64,000 bases of DNA from Hyaloraphidium curvatum SAG 235-1 (Eukaryota > Fungi > Monoblepharomycota). The stretch lies in the NCBI GenBank assembly GCA_025558095.1, contig JAIVFI010000004.1, positions 248,001-312,000 on the forward strand. The letters are read 5' to 3'. The notes below the pieces were generated by a model, which saw nothing but the letters and a program-made list of their open reading frames with translations, was not told where the DNA came from and did no database searches. Shown here one piece after another: positions 40,290 to 49,065 of the stretch. The translations under genes were made by a program, and so were the position numbers. Positions within the stretch are counted from its first letter, which is position 1. Every line of letters starts with the position of its first letter.

Positions 40290-40461
40290 GTGTGCTGCGA
40301 GCGCTACTGCGACTGATGCCCGCGCTGATGCGCGCCCGCGCGCGCAGCTAGCACGCGATCGATCTCGGTTCCGCGGCCAGTTCCGCGAGGACGCCGGAAC
40401 GCCGCTCCCCTGGAATAGCCCTCCACGGAGCACTCATATTCACTCCCGAGCCCGTGTCGTG

Positions 40462-40935
40462 ATGGCTGCGCTGCAGGGCTACGATGGCTACCCTCCCGAG
40501 CCGTGCACGGAATGCCCCGAGTGCGACAACTTCCTAAAAGGCAGAGTGATCAACATCTGCGACTGGTGCGGCCATAATGCCAGTGTGCACAAGCCGAACC
40601 AGCAGGCGGCCGGTAAGATTCCCTGCTCGGCGCGTCTCCTCGCGCTTACCTTCCCAGGCCCTTCACACATTCCTGCGTTCAAGTACCATGGAATGCCTCC
40701 ACGACCAGGCCTTGGACCGCAAATGGGCCAGCAGGCACCCAAGCCGCCCGCGCCACACTCCGTGTTCCGGACCGCGATGGCTGCGCCGACGGGCTACGAC
40801 CCGAGTGGCTACCCTCTCGAGCCGTGCACGGAATGCCCCGAGTGCGACAACTTCCTTGAAGGCAGAGTGATCAACATCTGCGACTGGTGCGGCCATAATG
40901 CCAGTGTGCACAAGCGGAACCAGCAGGCGGCCGGT
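40462..40935 (+). repeat. Near-identical duplicated coding module (40462-40614 and 40777-40935)
   Basis: Both copies begin ATGGCTGCG, encode CTECPECDNFL.GRVINICDWCGHNASVHK.NQQAA and end at an equivalent splice donor; only a few nucleotide differences in the core. Confidence 0.92.
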
Positions 40936-43204
40936 GAGTGGTCTGGCTCGCGTATCTCGGGCCGGTGACATCAAGCCGTCATCCTCTCCTCTCCAGTAAT
41001 GTCGTACAGACCGGCCGCTTCCGATGCCTGGGTTCTGCGCTACGGGCTTGACGCGCAGATGAAGCTTCGCGCGGATTGCAGGAACTGCGACTGTGCGGTG
41101 TACGCGCGGCAGAGCATGGGGAATGGTTGCGGGAACCCGAAGTGCCGCCACCTCTCGACCGATCACCGCCGTGGGATCATCTCCCGCAGTACAGCATTGT
41201 GTGCATTGACCACGCTGCACCTTAGAGGTCATTGAGTTCTGCGAGATCGACAGACCCTACTACGAGTTCAGCAATTCCTACGTCTCCCCGTTCCTCGACG
41301 CAGAGGGCAAGCAATGGGCGACTTCGGAGCACTATTTCCAAGCGCGCAAGTTTTTTCCACACGCACCCTGGTTGATGGAGCAGATACGGAGGCTGCCGAC
41401 TCCGCGTGATGCGTTCGAGCTCGCTCAACAGCACCGGGCGCAGATGCGGCCCGACTGGCATCAAGGAGAGTCCCTCAAAGTCATGAAGGAAGCCGTGCAC
41501 CGCAAATTCGTGCAGAACAATGAGCTCCTGGTGAAGCTTCTGGACACGGGGGACGCGTACATCGTGGAGCACACTACCAATGACGCGTACTGGGGAGACG
41601 GAGGCGGCAACGGCCGTGGCCGCAACGAGCTCGGGAAGGCGCTCATGCAACTTCGAGACGAGCTCAATGGAAGGGTCCGCCAACCGATCAAGGATCCGAC
41701 CGCGAGACCGCCGGAGCCCGACCGGCGCCAGGAAGCAGAAACTGAGGCGCGGCGTCGCCGGGAAGAAGAGCTGACGCGCGAGCACCAAAGGTTGGAGTTC
41801 GAGCGGCTGCGGGCGGCGGATCAGGCTCGGGAGGCCGAGCGAGCGCGTATAGCAGAGGCCGAGCGCCAGAAGAAAGATGCGGAGCAGGAGGCGGCACGGC
41901 TGCAGCAGCGCGAGGCGGACAAGGCGGAAGCCCGCAGGAGGCACCAGCAGCTGGCCGACGAAGCTGCCCGCGTGCGGGAACAGGAGGCGGAGGTGGCCCG
42001 CCGCATGGAGGAGCTCCGGGTTCGGGAGCAGGAGGTGGAGAGGAGGAAGGCTGAGGTTGAGGAGATGGCCAAGCTCGCCCCCCTTTTGCGTGCAACGCCC
42101 TCCTCGGACTCCTCTGAGGCAACCAAGCTCCCCTCGGAACCCTCCCGATCGGATGAGGCGACTAAGCTCCCCTCGGAACCCTCCCGATCGCGTGCTTCCT
42201 CGGGCAGCGCCAAATCCGACCATGCGGCCTTCCTCTCCAAGCTCCGCATCACGAAGGACGAGGTGGCTTACTCCACCGACGCCACGGCAGTTCTCGGCGA
42301 GGGCAGCTTCGGCATCGTGTACCGCGGCCTGCTCAGAGGCGCGACGCGGGTTGCCGTCAAGGCGATCAAAGGTGACGTGACCCCCGAGACGGTGGCGATG
42401 TTCCTCAAGGAGATCGCGGTGTGGGACGGGCTGAATCAGCGGAACGGTGAGCCCTCGAGCCGTCTTTCGCCATCACGGGCTTAATCTTCCCCGCAGTGCT
42501 TCCGCTCCTGGCGTTTTGCGAGTCCCCGCCCCTACTGATTTCGGAGCTGACCGAGGGCAGCATGCGCTCCCGACTGGACGCGCTGCGCTGGGACCAGGCC
42601 GTTGGGCTCAGGTACCTTCGCGGGGTAGCCGCAGGGATGGCCTACCTGCATTCCTACAAGGTGCTCCACGGGGACCTCAAGTGTGCCAACATCATGATCG
42701 GTGGGACTGCCGGGCGCATCTCGGGTCGCTCATCTCATCCGGGCAATGGCAGACCACGACATCCCCAAGATCGCCGACTTTGGCCTCGCCAAGGTCCGCT
42801 CCCACCTCTCCCTCGGCTCCACCCGCGGCGACGGCGATGCCACCGGCGGCGGCGGCGGCACGCCCCCGTTCATGGCCCCCGAGCTCTGGCGCGGGGGCAA
42901 GCTCCGCACACCCGTGGACGTGTACGCGTTCGCGATGGTGTGCTACGAGGTCACCGACGAGGGAGGATACCCTTTCGAAGGGCTGTGGATGGCGGCAGTG
43001 GGTGGTCCTGCACGCCGGATTTGATCGATCACTGGAGTTCTTTTCCTTTGTAAGGTCAGCGAGGCCGTCCTGCGTGGGGACCGCCCCGAGCGCCCCGACA
43101 ACGCCGATGACAAGATGTGGGCGCTCATGGAGCGCATGTGGGCGCAGAGCGCGGCCGACAGGCCGACGTTCGTCGAGGTCTGCGCGGAGATGGAGCGGTG
43201 GTAG
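40462..43204 (+). CDS. Fusion protein: Cys/His repeats - NADAR (YbiA/RibX) - coiled coil - TKL-type protein kinase
   Basis: Phase-compatible GT-AG introns 40613-40657, 40934-40996, 41189-41225, 42447-42496, 42701-42752, 42998-43054. NADAR motifs FSN, SEHYFQARK, EHTTNDAYWG, GRNELGKALM. Kinase motifs GEGSFG, VAVK, HGDLKCAN, DFG, MAPE. Confidence 0.85.
42114..42190 (+). repeat. 39-bp in-frame tandem repeat (EATKLPSEPSRS x2) in the kinase linker
   Basis: Two copies of aagctcccctcggaaccctcccgatcg, 39 nt apart. Confidence 0.85.
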
Positions 43205-43234
43205 GCATCAAGCTGTTGCTCGCCGGCGGGGTCC

Positions 43235-43800
43235 GGGGTTCTTGGAGAGGGCGGGTTTTGGCCTCCTGCGACGCCGATCCTGCACCTTGACGTAAGGACG
43301 ACAACGTGCTGATCGACGAGAACGGGGTCGCCAAGATCTCGGATTTCGGGATGTCCAAGATCCGGGCCACGGCCTTTCTACACTCCACGAAGCGTTCAGG
43401 AGGGACACCCGTCTTCACTTTCCCCCGAAAGTGGGATTGCCCCCCGAGCTCTTACGGCCATCCCGATCACTGACCGCCCCTTCCGCCCGCTCAGGCGTCG
43501 CCGCCGCGACCCAAGCCCGGCACCGCCACGGATCTTTACGCCTTCGCCATTGAGCTCCTCTCCGAAGACGATATTTTCCTCAGGGACCGGCTCATGGACG
43601 AGGAACTGATGGTCCCTGGGCACGGCATCGATTTGGAGCCCTTCGGCGCGCGTCTGCGGAGCGACCCGGCGTTCAGGCCCGAGCGGCCCCGTGGGGTACC
43701 GGACGCGACATGGGAGCTGATGAGGAGGTGTTGGGCGATGTATTCGGGGAGGTCGTGGCTGATCCTCCGGAGCACCGGCCGATCGCACGGAACTGCCATC
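43235..43800 (+). pseudogene. Fragmentary second TKL kinase domain
   Basis: Disjoint pieces VLGEGG.., DNVLIDENGVAKISDFGMSKIR..GGTPVF, ATDLYAFAI, RPERPRGVPDATWELMRRCWA in different frames; VAIK and HxD segments not found; in-frame stops immediately upstream of the DNVLID segment. Confidence 0.7.
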
Positions 43801-43944
43801 CAGACGGAGGGTCAATTCCATTTCCTGATAGATCATTACATATGCTTATGCGAACAATGGTCTTGTGCTCGCCGGGCGACGAAGAAGATATCAATCGTAC
43901 GCGCAGCCAAACCCCACCCAGATGTCGGCCGTACCGACGCAGCT

Positions 43945-45717
43945 TCATTTCTTCGGCAGCTTCGGTTCCGGCAGATCGGCTTCGCCTTCCGACTGTCCGT
44001 GAACCGGCGCCTCAACCATCGCCCCTCTCCGCAGCCGCCCCGCCGCCGTCGCGCAGGTCCTGGAGCAGTAGTTGTACCCCTGAAGCTTCGCCCGGGTCTT
44101 GCACTGAGGGCACGCGATCTCCTCGGGGAGCTGCTCCCGCTGCCGCCTGTCTTCTCCCGTCCCGCCACCGAACGCCTCGAGCGCATCCCGTAGGCGCTCC
44201 TGGAGCGGGCCGTCGCTTTCCCCAGCAGCGGAAAGCAGCGTTCGCACGGCTTCCGCCATCCGTGCTTCGCCCTCGTCGAGGAGATCCGCGTAGGTCGGAT
44301 CGAGCAGGAAGGACGAGACGTCGGCAGCAAGGAAGCCCACGCGATCCAGGAACACGTCGAGCAGCCTGGCCGCCCGCGCGATCGCAGGGCCGTCGACGCC
44401 CCCAGGCGGCTGTGGTGCGAGAAAGACAAAGTCCAGATCGTCCCCCCACAGCTCCTGGAGCAGTAAATCGTCGAACAACTGCACCGCCGTCCCGATCGCC
44501 GCCCTCGTCCCTTGCCCGTCAGCGGCCGGCCTGCGCGCCCGGCGCACGCCGTCCACGAGCCGGTGGAACGTGTCGTCGGCGAGCGAGTACCCGACAAACA
44601 GCATGTGTTTGGTGATGAGCATGGCCTGGACGATGCCAAAGAGCGCCGTGGCGCGCTCGGGGAGGCCGAGGTAGTCGGCCCGGGTGAGCACCATGTCGCC
44701 GCGGGAGATGTCGCCGTGGAGCTTGAGCACCCACCGGCCCTCGGGCCCGATGGGCTCGTAGGGCAGCACGGCGACCTTGCGGCCGCCGGAGCGGCATGCA
44801 TCCTCGTAGAGCGTGTCGTAGTTGGTCGTGACCGCCTCGCGGGCGCCGAGGCCGGCGAGCAGCGCGTGGGCCAGGGCGTGGCGCTCCGAGCGTACGAGGT
44901 CCGCGAGCGCGGAGCGGTAGTTTGCATCGTCCTGGAATTTGCGGGCTACGAGGAGGGCCTGGTCGCGCACGTCCAGCGCGCGAAGGCGCTCCCGGTAGGA
45001 CGCGTCCATGCCCAGCGGGGCGGCGAGCTGCTCGATCAGCGCGTTCCACATCGGCAGGCCGGCCCCGGCGCTCACGCCGGCGCCGAGGAAAAGCACCAGG
45101 TCGCGGCGCTGGGCTGTGCCGGCGAGCCTTTCCGCCTGCGCATTCAGCGTCTCCGATCGCTCGCCCATGTCCCACCGCTGTGCATCGGGCGTCTTCTGCC
45201 TGGCCCGCTGGGCGGCGGCGTAGCCCACGGGACCGAACGCCACCAGCACCACGTCGACGCCCACGTCGCTTGCGGCCTTTGCCAGCCTCTCCACCAGCAC
45301 GGCATACACGGCGCCCTTTCGGCCCGCCATGCCGCCCGCGCCGGTGCCGACGACGTGCACGGCCACGCGCGGCGGGGGGCCCGCCGGTCTCTCGGCGTCT
45401 TTTGCGTACGCGGCGACGAACTCGGCGGCCCCGTCCGCGTACCATTCCGGGGGCCGGTTGCTGTGTCCCACCGCCCCGATCCAAATCGCCGGCGAACGCG
45501 GCCCGCCCGGCCGGAGCTGGAAGCACCGCACAGCATCGACCCAGCCGGCCGGCGGCGTCACGTCCGCGGGCAGCCGGCACTCGTCGGGCGCGAGCCCGAG
45601 CGCTGCGCGCCACCGCGGCGTGATGCGCAGCCCGCGGTCGGACGGCACGAGCACGGCGTCGCACACGAGCCGCGTGAGGTCGCCGTCGACGATGAAGAGG
45701 TGGCCGGGCGTCGCCAT
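43945..45717 (-). CDS. Macro-like + SIR2-like (SIR2_2, NADase-type) protein with C-terminal Zn finger
   Basis: GDLTRLVCDAVLVP and VAVHVVGTGAGG (Macro-like); LVLFLGAGVSAGAGLPMW, TTNYDTLYE, VLKLHGD, MLFVGYSLADDTF (SIR2); CPQC..YCSRTC; intronless 590 aa. Confidence 0.88.
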   Translation of the reverse strand: MATPGHLFIVDGDLTRLVCDAVLVPSDRGLRITPRWRAALGLAPDECRLPADVTPPAGWVDAVRCFQLRPGGPRSPAIWIGAVGHSNRPPEWYADGAAEFVAAYAKDAERPAGPPPRVAVHVVGTGAGGMAGRKGAVYAVLVERLAKAASDVGVDVVLVAFGPVGYAAAQRARQKTPDAQRWDMGERSETLNAQAERLAGTAQRRDLVLFLGAGVSAGAGLPMWNALIEQLAAPLGMDASYRERLRALDVRDQALLVARKFQDDANYRSALADLVRSERHALAHALLAGLGAREAVTTNYDTLYEDACRSGGRKVAVLPYEPIGPEGRWVLKLHGDISRGDMVLTRADYLGLPERATALFGIVQAMLITKHMLFVGYSLADDTFHRLVDGVRRARRPAADGQGTRAAIGTAVQLFDDLLLQELWGDDLDFVFLAPQPPGGVDGPAIARAARLLDVFLDRVGFLAADVSSFLLDPTYADLLDEGEARMAEAVRTLLSAAGESDGPLQERLRDALEAFGGGTGEDRRQREQLPEEIACPQCKTRAKLQGYNYCSRTCATAAGRLRRGAMVEAPVHGQSEGEADLPEPKLPKK

Positions 45718-45912
45718 GGCTCGGTGTGTCTCCCAGCGTTAACGAGTCTAAGCATCACGGCGCCATCAACCCGCTAGACCCTGATGCACCCTGATCGGCC
45801 ATTCGAGTTAGAGCAGCGACACTCTCATCCGGAGCTGCAGGTGTCCACGTTGCAGCCGATCGCCCAGAGTCGTCTCCAAAAGAGCAACATTACGATTCCT
45901 TACACATCTCAA

Positions 45913-46489
45913 CTAAGAAACGGACCAGTCGGCCGATATCGTGCACTCCCCCACGATGTTGCCAATGTTATCCGGGACAAAGAGCAGCGCGTTGAGCGAG
46001 TAGTTGCCCCGCTCCGTCCACTCTTCCGGGTACTGTTCGTGCGCAGTCAACCCGGCAATTCGCATCAGTTGTCTGCCCAGGGGCGGGGGTAGCCAAGCAA
46101 CCCACAATGACCTCATTCACAGCAAACGCACCCCAGCTGAACGTCCCCAGCTCCGACGCCCCGACGCTCCCGTCAAACAGCGAGGTATCCCCGCGGCGGA
46201 TGGAGACCGAGACGCTGCAGCGTTCCAGGAATACGTTGTCGGTGGGGAGGTCGGACCATGTGACCGTGGCGCGCACAGGCTGGCCCTGCGGGTATCTGTC
46301 AACTGTGCGATGTGCGGGCGCCAAGATCGCGCGTGTGATCTGTCGCACCGGGACGGGGGGGTTCGTTTCGCAGGACACCTCGATGGAGTAGTTCTTGGTG
46401 AAGCTGGGCGGGTTGTTCCCGGAGAGCGGCCGCGACGTGAACTCGTTGAACGTGAAAGTCCCGAAGCCGCGGACGGCGCCGACAGACAT
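45913..46489 (-). CDS. Small beta-rich orphan protein
   Basis: ORF MSVGAVRG..AVNE can splice (GT..CAG, ~46033-46110) to YPEEWTERGNYSLNALLFVPDNIGNIVGECTISADWSVS*. Confidence 0.55.
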
Positions 46490-46559
46490 GGCGCGACAAT
46501 CAGTGCGAAGGACGACGCGTGACGAGCGCGGCTCTCAGTCTAATAGCGGCGTTGTCTCG

Positions 46560-46856
46560 AATCTCGGCACACGCGAGGTGTGGTCCGCCGGACGCGGACG
46601 CGGCAAAATCTCCTTCGGCGGCAGAGTGGAAAGAAGTCCGAGGTCTGCAATCAACGCCGGCGGCCGGTAGAAGCTCCCGATCATGTTCTTCCCTGCAGTA
46701 TGTTGACGCCCGTCTTGCCGCCCACCGACAAATCGATCATGGAGGAGCGTTGTCGGCACCTGAACGAAATCGATGCCGCGCTGATCGCAGCCGCGAACCC
46801 TGCATGTCGTTATCGACACCGCCTTCCAACACGACCACGAGGGCGCCGCGGTCGAA
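46560..46856 (-). pseudogene. aroB: Decayed partial copy of 3-dehydroquinate synthase (aroB)
   Basis: Aligns by eye to 56306-56585 (e.g. gtggaaagaagtccgaggtc, ggtagaagctcccgatcatgttcttccc); encodes [14 protein letters not shown] and [10 protein letters not shown] with frameshifts and an insertion. Confidence 0.9.
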
Positions 46857-46888
46857 ACCTTCGTTGCCGATCCCGATCGCCCTCCATT

Positions 46889-48760
46889 TCACGCGTGCAG
46901 CATCGCCGACTGCAGCACCACTCCGACCGTCTGCGCGCCGCCCCCGGGCCGGTACTTGGCGTCCACGTTCTGGCACAGCACGTGCAGCCTCGGATCCCTC
47001 CCCAGCCTGTCCACCAGCTCGTCGAACCTGACCCTGTGCGGATCCTCCGCCAGCGCGTCGACCACGGCCACGGTGCACATGCCCTGCGACCGGCGGCCCC
47101 CGAGGTTCATGTCCAGCCCGGGGCCGACGTTGCCGATCAGCGCCGTGCGCGGGGGCAGGTCCGAGGCAACGGCAAAGGTGAAGCAGCCGTCGAGGATGAC
47201 GAGCTTGCGGCAGCGCAGGTCGCCGAGCGCGGGGAGCATGGCCGAGGGCTTGAGGAGGCCGCCTTCGACGACGAGGCTGCCGTCTTCGGTGCCGTGGCCC
47301 GAGTAGTGCAGGACGAAGAGGTCGTCTTTGCCGAGCTGGCCTCCTTCCTGGGCGATGGCGGCGCGGATGGCCTTGGGCTTGGCTTCCCTGCCGAAGAGCT
47401 TGGTGGTGGTGAAGCCGCGCTTCTGCAGTGCGGAGCGCATGACGTCGAGGTCGTGCTCCGGGCCCTGGAGGTTCCCGCCCGAGTGGCCGACGAGCAGGGC
47501 GCGGCCGCGGCCGGGCTGCACGGCGACGGACAGGCGGAACTTTTCGTTGCCGCCCAGGGTGATGACGGAGCCGTCCTTGAGCGGGACGTGCTTGCCCGGC
47601 TGCGCTTTGGTGCCGTCGACCAGGGTCCCGTTGGACGAGTTGAGGTCGACGATGGAGAAGCCGTGCCTGCCCTTGGCATTCTCGGGCGGGTACAGGAGCG
47701 CGTGGTTCCTGCTGATGCGGATGTTGTCCGAAACCATGATGGCCAGCTGGGCGTCGCGGATGTTCCCCGACAGCGCGCGCGCGCCGTGGTCCTCGACGCC
47801 CTCGGACCTGCCGAGGTGCACGACGCAGTCGACGGTGAACTCGGGCCCGCGCGGGTTGCCCGACGAATCGAGCTGCCTGAGCTTGCCGACGGTCTCGCCG
47901 GCGCGGGCATGCACGGGCCGCGGCGGAGTCGGCGACACGGGCCTGCCCGAGCCGAAGGCGTCGAACAGCTTGCGCACCTCGGGGCTCGTGGCGACCTCCG
48001 CGGCGGTCCTGCCGGCCTTGTTCCTGCGCCTGACGTCGACGCGGTCCGTGCGCGAGAGCAGCAGCTTGACGGCGACGTCGTGGCCGTTGCGGCTGGCGAC
48101 CATCAGGCCGGTGTTGCCCTCGAGGTCGACTGCGTTAACGTCGACGCGCGAGCTGCCGAGCAGCAGCAGCAGCACGTTTGCTGCGTCGCCGTTGAGGCAG
48201 GCTGCGATGAAGCCGGTGTCGCCGGCTGCGGTGTGCACGTTGACGTTGACGCGGCGATCGGCCAGCAGCAGCGCGACGACCTCTGAGCGGCCGGTTGCGC
48301 ACGCGGCCACGAAGGGCGTGTAGCCGCCGTCGTCTGCCTTGTTTGCGTCCGCGCGGCCGTCGAGCAGCAGCGCGCCGGCGACGTCCCCGTGGCCCTCCTG
48401 CGCGGCGACGAACAATGCCGTGCGGCCGTCGGCGTCCGCCGCGTCTGCGTCGACGCGGCGATCGGCGAGCAGCGCGCGCGCGGCGTCCGCGGCGCCGAGG
48501 CTGCACGCGACGAGCAGCGGCGTGGCGCCGCCCGGCCCGGCCGCGTCGGGGTCGACGCGGCGATCGCCCAGCAAAACACGCACGGCGTCCGCGCTGCCGC
48601 CCATCGCCGCGTAGTGCAGCGGCGTCGCGCCGTCGCCGTCGCGCGCCGCGGGGTCGACGTCGGGCCGCGCGAGGAGCTCCCGCATCCGCGCCACATCGCC
48701 GCTCGCGCTCGCCTCGAACAGCTTGAGCGTCTTGGTCGGCTTGGACCCGTTGTTGCCCAT
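46889..48760 (-). CDS. Ankyrin repeat - FHA - caspase-like (peptidase C14) protein with N-myristoylation motif
   Basis: MGNNGS start; ~7-8 ankyrin repeats (GATPLHYAA, GRTALFVAA, GNTGLMVAS); FHA LGRS..ISRNHA..SSNGTLVDG; caspase RALLVG, HYSGHG, VILDGC; intronless. Confidence 0.88.
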   Translation of the reverse strand: MGNNGSKPTKTLKLFEASASGDVARMRELLARPDVDPAARDGDGATPLHYAAMGGSADAVRVLLGDRRVDPDAAGPGGATPLLVACSLGAADAARALLADRRVDADAADADGRTALFVAAQEGHGDVAGALLLDGRADANKADDGGYTPFVAACATGRSEVVALLLADRRVNVNVHTAAGDTGFIAACLNGDAANVLLLLLGSSRVDVNAVDLEGNTGLMVASRNGHDVAVKLLLSRTDRVDVRRRNKAGRTAAEVATSPEVRKLFDAFGSGRPVSPTPPRPVHARAGETVGKLRQLDSSGNPRGPEFTVDCVVHLGRSEGVEDHGARALSGNIRDAQLAIMVSDNIRISRNHALLYPPENAKGRHGFSIVDLNSSNGTLVDGTKAQPGKHVPLKDGSVITLGGNEKFRLSVAVQPGRGRALLVGHSGGNLQGPEHDLDVMRSALQKRGFTTTKLFGREAKPKAIRAAIAQEGGQLGKDDLFVLHYSGHGTEDGSLVVEGGLLKPSAMLPALGDLRCRKLVILDGCFTFAVASDLPPRTALIGNVGPGLDMNLGGRRSQGMCTVAVVDALAEDPHRVRFDELVDRLGRDPRLHVLCQNVDAKYRPGGGAQTVGVVLQSAMLHA

Positions 48761-49065
48761 CGCGGTTTGCTGATGACTGATTGCGAGCACCGACGATGAG
48801 GACGACGTCGAGGCGGTGAGACTGATCGCGATCGCGGGGAAACTCCAGCACCCACCGCCTTCCGCCGATCTCGACGTAGAGGCACTCGAGGCAAGACCTA
48901 TGAAGGAGCAGTTCACTCTCTTTCGCGTTCGCGTTATCACTCGCAGCAGTGGCGGCGGGTCCAGACCGTCTCCCAGCCGCAATCGCGATCGATGCCTTGA
49001 CTGACTGACTGACTTTGCCCTGACTTTACCCACGACCGTTGCGGAGCACATCCGGCCCGCCAGAC

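Follow-up and report, generated by a model that had tools for sequence, protein, structure and literature searches.

The early-diverging fungus Hyaloraphidium curvatum SAG 235-1 has an intron-rich and GC-rich genome of 31.9 Mb in 55 contigs, from which we analysed one window of 64,000 nucleotides (contig JAIVFI010000004.1; G000:C4:248001-312000). At 40462-48760 of this window, three intact multidomain genes lie adjacent to one another within about 8.3 kb, together with two gene remnants and one intact small gene (Table 1): a finger-NADAR-kinase (gene 1), a Macro-SIR2 gene (gene 2) and an ankyrin-FHA-caspase gene (gene 3). A sequence-only reading had already placed the three multidomain genes at these positions, and Pfam, profile and fold searches agree with it, confirming the NADAR, kinase, Macro, SIR2_2, ankyrin, FHA and C14 domains. 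Residue comparison with the respective families showed that the catalytic residues of all three genes are intact. Evidence for splicing, which we took as the mark of RNA, comes from the contigs of one RNA run, X1, in which transcription of genes 1 and 2 was seen.

Table 1. Features of the cluster, in positions of the window.
Feature	Position	Strand	Description
Gene 1	40462-43204	+	806 aa; three Cys fingers / NADAR / coiled coil / non-RD TKL kinase; from Pfam, RNA joints and reading frame
Gene 1 exons	40462-40612, 40658-40933, 40997-41170, 41226-42446, 42497-42700, 42753-42997, 43055-43204	+	
Two Cys/His finger copies (gene 1)	40462-40933	+	91% DNA identity
Third Cys/His finger (gene 1)	40997-41170	+	likeness to P0135 N-terminus
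NADAR domain, YbiA-type (gene 1)	41237-41665	+	Pfam and active-site spacing
Glu/Arg-rich coiled coil (gene 1)	41730-42075	+	common to LRR- and ankyrin-kinase paralogues
TKL kinase (gene 1)	42260-43204	+	complete motifs
Kinase remnant	43269-43750	+	partial, frameshifted; intron 43431-43494
Gene 2	43945-45717	-	intronless, 590 aa; Macro / SIR2_2 (SIRim) / helical tail / Cys finger
Orphan gene	45916-46489	-	146 aa; exons 46489-46349, 46285-46106, 46032-45916
aroB fragment	46606-46856	-	decayed copy of aroB at 55724-56902
Gene 3	46889-48760	-	intronless, 623 aa; myristoylation motif / ankyrins / FHA / caspase-fold protease

The gene 3 protein starts with a canonical MGxxxS myristoylation motif, followed by ankyrin repeats, an FHA domain (Pfam, 4e-13) and a protease domain (Peptidase_C14, 1.4e-08), the FHA and caspase folds both being confirmed. 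The FHA residues expected to bind phospho-Thr, G317-R318, S350, H353 and N377 (GR, SxxH and NG motifs), are present in gene 3 and conserved in a family of stand-alone FHA-caspases, which the last 340 residues of the protein match end to end. Members of this family are about 345 aa long, and eight matches are 31-38% identical to gene 3 over 84-98% of the region. The protease dyad of gene 3, H489 and C526, is likewise shared: of 76 family members, 70 have the His and 73 the Cys. The protein is distinct from the host's two other C14 matches. Metacaspases and orthocaspases (clan CD, C14) have the His-Cys dyad and the fold in common with it (Z 17.6 to Arabidopsis metacaspase 4), but gene 3 derives from the prokaryotic FHA-caspase family, is fused to myristoylated ankyrins and is short in its C-terminal part.

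At 50% identity the FHA-caspase family comprises about a hundred representatives (family set P0121-P0254; loci L033, L205-L212 and L207). Carriers include six of 251 Nanobdellota genomes (the seed genome counted), a named Woesearchaeota genome and bacterial contigs. In a quick tree, gene 3 falls on a long end branch (1.19) inside a 30-member clade (support 99) whose members include one protein of Woesearchaeota and two encoded on bacterial contigs. The prokaryotic, conflict-type origin that had been proposed for this gene is therefore upheld by a stand-alone DPANN and bacterial family and by the support for this clade. We found no paper on FHA-caspases, those of DPANN archaea included, and the ESM Atlas gave no cluster for them (best score 0.77); the stand-alone FHA-caspases of DPANN archaea and some bacteria are apparently an undescribed family. 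No ankyrin-fused FHA-caspase occurred among the longer matches checked, and the architecture of gene 3 has no match elsewhere in the searches made. The ankyrins themselves point to the host, as their best matches in the genome are mostly ankyrin-kinases, with a kinase in seven of 11 fetched loci. From run X1, which holds 74% of the sequence words of 40400-49000 and thus more than the genes other than gene 3 explain, we infer that gene 3 is also transcribed. A 97-codon upstream extension of the gene (from 49051) is unlikely, since this stretch has a GC content at third codon positions (GC3) of 0.66 and contains a TCAGT repeat also found upstream of paralogues. The repeat TCAGTCAGT, at 48999-49008, lies upstream of both gene 3 and receptor-kinase paralogues (L023, L027, L028 and L029), and is possibly a core promoter element.

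Gene 2 encodes a Macro domain (residues 1-180), a SIR2_2 or SIRim domain (186-467), a helical tail and a host-type Cys finger (536-555). The SIR2_2 match is strong (Pfam 2.6e-24; 86.4 bits against a cut-off of 24.5), and the Macro domain, which Pfam missed, was found by profile search (macroH2A, 6.9e-08). In the predicted structure (predicted local distance difference test score, pLDDT, 88.9), the Macro part superposes on a macrodomain with Z 15.3 and the SIR2 part on ThsA with Z 22.4, the closest folds being ThsA, KomC, DSR2 and Avs5; the best PADLOC match is also ThsA (4e-23). Residues N299 and H334 are the counterparts of ThsA N112 and H152 and are invariant in 109 sequences. The sequence of the SIR2 core contains no Zn-binding Cys tetrad, and its class was set by motif and fold. 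The homologues number more than 1,300. Among the best 120, identity is 38-52% across most of the length, and the named proteins belong to Actinomycetota, an affinity with which the ESM Atlas clusters agree. Consistent with this, a tree of the database matches, from which the published clade C sequences described below were left out, places gene 2 among bacterial-type sequences of the Actinomycetota type. By contrast with these homologues, its C-terminal finger occurs in none of 119 prokaryote-type sequences, while fingers of this type are present twice in the host leucine-rich-repeat (LRR) kinase L029 and also in fungal and environmental NADAR proteins.

The Macro-SIRim architecture is already known, since Bonhomme et al. 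(bioRxiv 10.1101/2024.09.18.613514) report a eukaryotic clade C of SIRims fused to a Macro domain, in 83 species. As far as their table was consulted, its clade C sequences have the same motif series as gene 2, and its fungal rows, including the single entry of Gonapodya, belong to clade A. Gene 2 thus has the Macro and SIRim domains, motif order, catalytic Asn/His and ThsA-like fold of the clade C entries consulted there, and adds a member to a family already known. The prokaryotic conflict-type origin in the sequence-only reading is upheld and the NADase residues are intact, but the Macro-SIR2 part of the island that it called undescribed is already known from eukaryotes. Unlike clade C, gene 2 is intronless, has bacterial proteins of about 50% identity as its best matches and carries an extra host finger. 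Because of the first two features, and because its motifs, as judged by eye, follow the actinobacterial consensus, gene 2 likely reached the fungus by its own transfer, apart from clade C; as the clade C sequences are absent from the tree, this is unproven.

Of the known defence systems, ThsA, DSR2 and KomC have the NADase-type SIR2 fold in common with gene 2 (Z about 22), and the Macro domain is a plausible sensor of an ADP-ribose signal, as in the Macro-transmembrane effector of type II Thoeris. Gene 2 itself lacks a SLOG domain and is not a transmembrane effector, and at the locus, to which the look for TIR genes was confined, we found no SLOG domain, transmembrane effector or adjoining TIR partner that would place it in Thoeris. 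The fungal protein Mfs1, a macrodomain-fused SirTM, also joins a macrodomain to a sirtuin in one chain, but the sirtuin of gene 2 is of the SIR2_2 and not the SirTM type (Z about 10-11 to SirTM), and superposition of the whole chains is poor (Z 11.2; root-mean-square deviation 16.4). Some bacterial Macro-SIR2 proteins are fused to GIY-YIG or PD-(D/E)XK nucleases (P0014 and P0074), and one actinobacterial locus (L115:805-8557) holds two ADP-ribosylglycohydrolases, NrtR, a metallophosphoesterase, an ankyrin-like gene and a Macro-SIR2 gene.

These affinities bear on whether the cluster has anything to do with immunity. The three genes could be metabolic or housekeeping recruits, serving NAD+ and ADP-ribose clean-up and as a regulatory protease, or they could be neutral passengers. 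YbiA-type NADARs, to which gene 1 belongs, clear riboflavin intermediates (PMC11543638), the NAD regulator NrtR is found among bacterial Macro-SIR2 neighbours, prokaryotic FHA-caspases are orphans among housekeeping genes, and the cluster has aroB and other metabolic genes of bacterial type in its vicinity. We nevertheless consider such a non-immune role very unlikely, given that the closest folds of the SIR2_2 domain and its best PADLOC match are defence effectors, that the enzymes are fused to receptor-kinase parts, and that some of the bacterial homologues carry nucleases.

Gene 1 was assembled from seven exons. Five GT..AG joints are present in X1 contigs (40613-40657, 40934-40996, 41171-41225, 42447-42496 and 42998-43054) and the sixth intron, 42701-42752, was fixed by the loose end of an RNA contig; once joined, the exons form an open frame of 806 aa ending at 43204. 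Public databases were searched with one exon at a time, while the joined model was used for the frame check and for comparison with fetched loci. The NADAR domain (Pfam, 1.4e-32) has the catalytic residues of its family, E235, K242, E315, D320 and W323, at the same spacing as E43, K50, E125, D130 and W133 of P. nicotianae (PMC11543638). Gene 1 therefore agrees in its active site with the NADAR hydrolases YbiA, DarG1 and the oomycete NADAR, but differs from them in its fusion to a TKL kinase and in having neither a DarT nor a PARP gene adjoining it in the locus. The kinase, with matches in three exons, reads through a Gly loop, VAVK, helix-C Glu, HGD (non-RD), DFG and APE in one frame.

Each part of this protein has relatives in a different setting. 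The kinase belongs to an expanded host family with at least 24 close matches, and its paralogues, among those scanned, have ankyrin or LRR N-termini, some of them ahead of a related coiled coil; the coiled coil of gene 1 is 70% identical in DNA to that of the receptor-kinase L029. The first two Cys/His fingers are recent copies of each other found nowhere else in the genome, and the third resembles the N-terminus of P0135, an environmental finger-NADAR protein (pairwise E 4e-05). P0135 and P0139 combine finger and NADAR in the same way without a kinase. Given these kinase-free look-alikes and the ankyrin and LRR fronts of the paralogues, gene 1 is best read as a sensor-slot swap in a host chassis: judged from sequence, it is a eukaryote-type finger-NADAR placed on a host TKL kinase. 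The prokaryotic style of construction that had been ascribed to the whole cluster accordingly applies to the Macro-SIR2 and FHA-caspase genes, but not to this one. The architecture of gene 1 has no match elsewhere in the searches made. Besides gene 1, none of 13 matches had a NADAR fused to a TKL kinase, in a shallow, length-limited search of 99 candidates; because the search was shallow, this absence is weak evidence.

Genes 1, 2 and 3 thus all share parts with the host's large ankyrin/LRR-coiled-coil-TKL kinase family, in a genome with at least 158 PK_Tyr_Ser-Thr matches and 642 candidates. Their joint arrival as one prokaryotic operon was rejected, since the donors are unrelated and the modules never occur together in the prokaryotic loci scanned. 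Around 83 Macro-SIR2 loci, we found ten NrtR genes, ten ADP-ribosylglycohydrolases, one kinase, no NADAR and, apart from one weak FHA/caspase-profile match (4e-10), no strong full-length FHA-caspase match. Around ten FHA-caspase loci there was one kinase, which adjoined the FHA-caspase, and neither a NADAR nor a Macro-SIR2 gene; the linked combination of genes 1 to 3 was not found in either set. Orthologues of gene 2 and of gene 3 were not found in eukaryotes, nor were orthologues of the cluster in other fungi, among searched genomes that included no related fungal genome. The three separate origins, the lack of an operon precedent, the orphan gene interleaved between genes 2 and 3 and the shared host parts therefore favour a patch of domain shuffling. 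We estimate at about 0.6 the probability that this is a rearrangement-prone patch of separately acting, intact conflict proteins that arose by part swaps with the host receptor-kinase family, with no inherited operon or circuit.

Several observations weigh against this reading. The rare domains are few in the genome (two matches for NADAR, two for SIR2_2 and, by Pfam, three for C14), and under uniform placement the chance of finding NADAR, SIR2_2 and C14 within about 5 kb is around 2e-6, although this test was post hoc and chance alone would give 0.4-27 triplets of this kind were 2-8% of the genes, assumed to number 14,000, counted as conflict genes. Next to the scanned kinase paralogues are mostly genes of ordinary function (MFS, FAD oxidoreductase) or retroelements, not other conflict enzymes. 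In addition, all three genes fit one theme, and genes 1 and 2, both of which handle ADP-ribose, are convergent like the NADAR/PARP pairs of one other locus. Finally, the architectures, the intact active sites, the donors and the shared host parts are observed, while a role of the three genes in immunity is suggested by their domain families.

The convergent arrangement raises the prospect that genes 1 and 2 are a writer and an eraser or sensor of ADP-ribose, with the SIRim making ADP-ribose or an adduct that the NADAR-kinase removes or senses, and with gene 3 unrelated. The tail finger of gene 2 also occurs on fungal and environmental NADAR proteins, and bacterial Macro-SIR2 genes are often in NrtR or ADP-ribose hydrolase clusters. 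P0139, whose NADAR belongs to the clade of gene 1, comes from a locus where NADAR and PARP genes form two convergent pairs, one of which has fingers on both NADAR and PARP. We consider this pairing rather unlikely, as that locus is the only analogous one and has PARP in place of SIR2, as none of the 83 bacterial Macro-SIR2 genes has a NADAR beside it, and as the finger of gene 2 can be explained by capture from a broken LRR-finger-kinase, a remnant of which lies between genes 1 and 2. The P0139 locus (L233:3125-11001, GCA_040384145.1), probably eukaryotic, also encodes Cys-finger-repeat proteins and looks like an ADP-ribosylation toxin-antitoxin cluster.

The sequence-only reading had gone further and proposed one coherent circuit: on sensing a nucleotide, the NADAR-kinase would phosphorylate a target for the FHA domain of the membrane-anchored caspase to bind, and Macro-SIR2 would be an effector acting in parallel. 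In favour of the circuit, no catalytic or phospho-binding residue is lost, run X1 contains transcripts of both gene 1 and gene 2, and Ser/Thr kinases are encoded in five of five FHA-caspase archaea as opposed to 13 of 30 controls, the two genes being adjacent in one case. After matching for genome size, however, this co-occurrence is not significant (p 0.15), and the circuit is quite unlikely in view of the missing synteny and operon precedent, the unrelated origins, the interleaved orphan gene and the very many other host kinases. The FHA domain could read any one of the host's kinases, which number well over a hundred. It is similarly improbable that actinobacterial Macro-SIRim, a DPANN-type FHA-caspase and host receptor kinases were linked de novo into an ADP-ribose-sensing death pathway with ALPK1-TIFA-like logic; if they were, the locus would offer a rare view of a eukaryotic immune pathway in the course of assembly. 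In the animal axis, ALPK1, an alpha-kinase, has an ADP-heptose domain of its own, and TIFA serves TRAF6 as an adaptor. The likeness drawn to this axis holds as an analogy of logic only, from a nucleotide-sugar sensor kinase through phospho-Thr to FHA; the kinase of gene 1 is a TKL kinase and its sensor a NADAR, with no homology beyond the FHA fold.

Under the preferred reading of a domain-shuffling patch, modules of ankyrin, LRR or finger, coiled coil and TKL kinase would have been swapped with conflict enzymes, and each product would act alone. In gene 1, the NADAR would bind or hydrolyse an ADP-ribose adduct, and dimerisation through the coiled coil would switch on the non-RD kinase. In gene 2, occupation of the Macro pocket by an ADP-ribose derivative may cause the protein to oligomerise and its SIRim domain to hydrolyse NAD+, as in ThsA-like effectors. 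Gene 3 would be tethered to the membrane, where binding of its FHA domain to phospho-Thr produced by some host TKL kinase could cluster and activate the protease domains. Such a link from kinase to FHA-caspase is plausible at the level of the kinase family, not for the neighbouring kinase in particular. Even if there is no circuit, the locus illustrates how an early-diverging fungus makes prokaryotic conflict enzymes its own, joining them to pieces of a receptor-kinase family that has expanded. It further points to an apparently undescribed, likely phospho-gated DPANN caspase family that reached a eukaryote and to a fungal Macro-SIRim acquired probably by its own transfer. Each protein is a single chain and can be tested directly in yeast or in vitro.

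Local turnover is evident from both remnants, which had been recognised earlier and are confirmed here, and from the recent finger duplication in gene 1. The kinase remnant, frameshifted but still spliced, matches a paralogue on contig C6 at 76% DNA identity; its source family is that of the kinase of L029, which is built as LRR / finger / LRR / finger / coiled coil / kinase. The L029 (G000:C6:870000-879999) and L032 receptor-kinase paralogues adjoin reverse-transcriptase elements. The aroB fragment is 85% identical in DNA, with indels, to an intact aroB that is intronless, bacterial-type and 9.5 kb away. Bacterial contamination or a chimeric assembly was rejected, as genes 2 and 3 are in frame with host modules and have a host-like GC3 (0.88-0.94), their gene neighbours are spliced, and one RNA contig covers sequence of both the spliced remnant and gene 2. 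To the left, as read from sequence, the cluster is flanked by a MT-A70 methyltransferase, a mitochondrial carrier and an open reading frame (ORF) without assignment, and to the right by a chitin synthase and, farther out, the bacterial-type aroB.

The ORF at 46489-45916 was also considered as a remnant, which was rejected because it is intact once spliced. Both introns of this orphan gene are seen in RNA; exons 1 and 2 have no Pfam match, and exon 2 is single-copy in the genome. As a 1,746-nt RNA contig carries exon 2 near its 3' end, the orphan gene may be read through from gene 3. The RNA contig across the kinase remnant and gene 2 (43157-45555) joins the spliced plus-strand remnant to a gene on the minus strand, which suggests overlapping 3' ends or antisense read-through.

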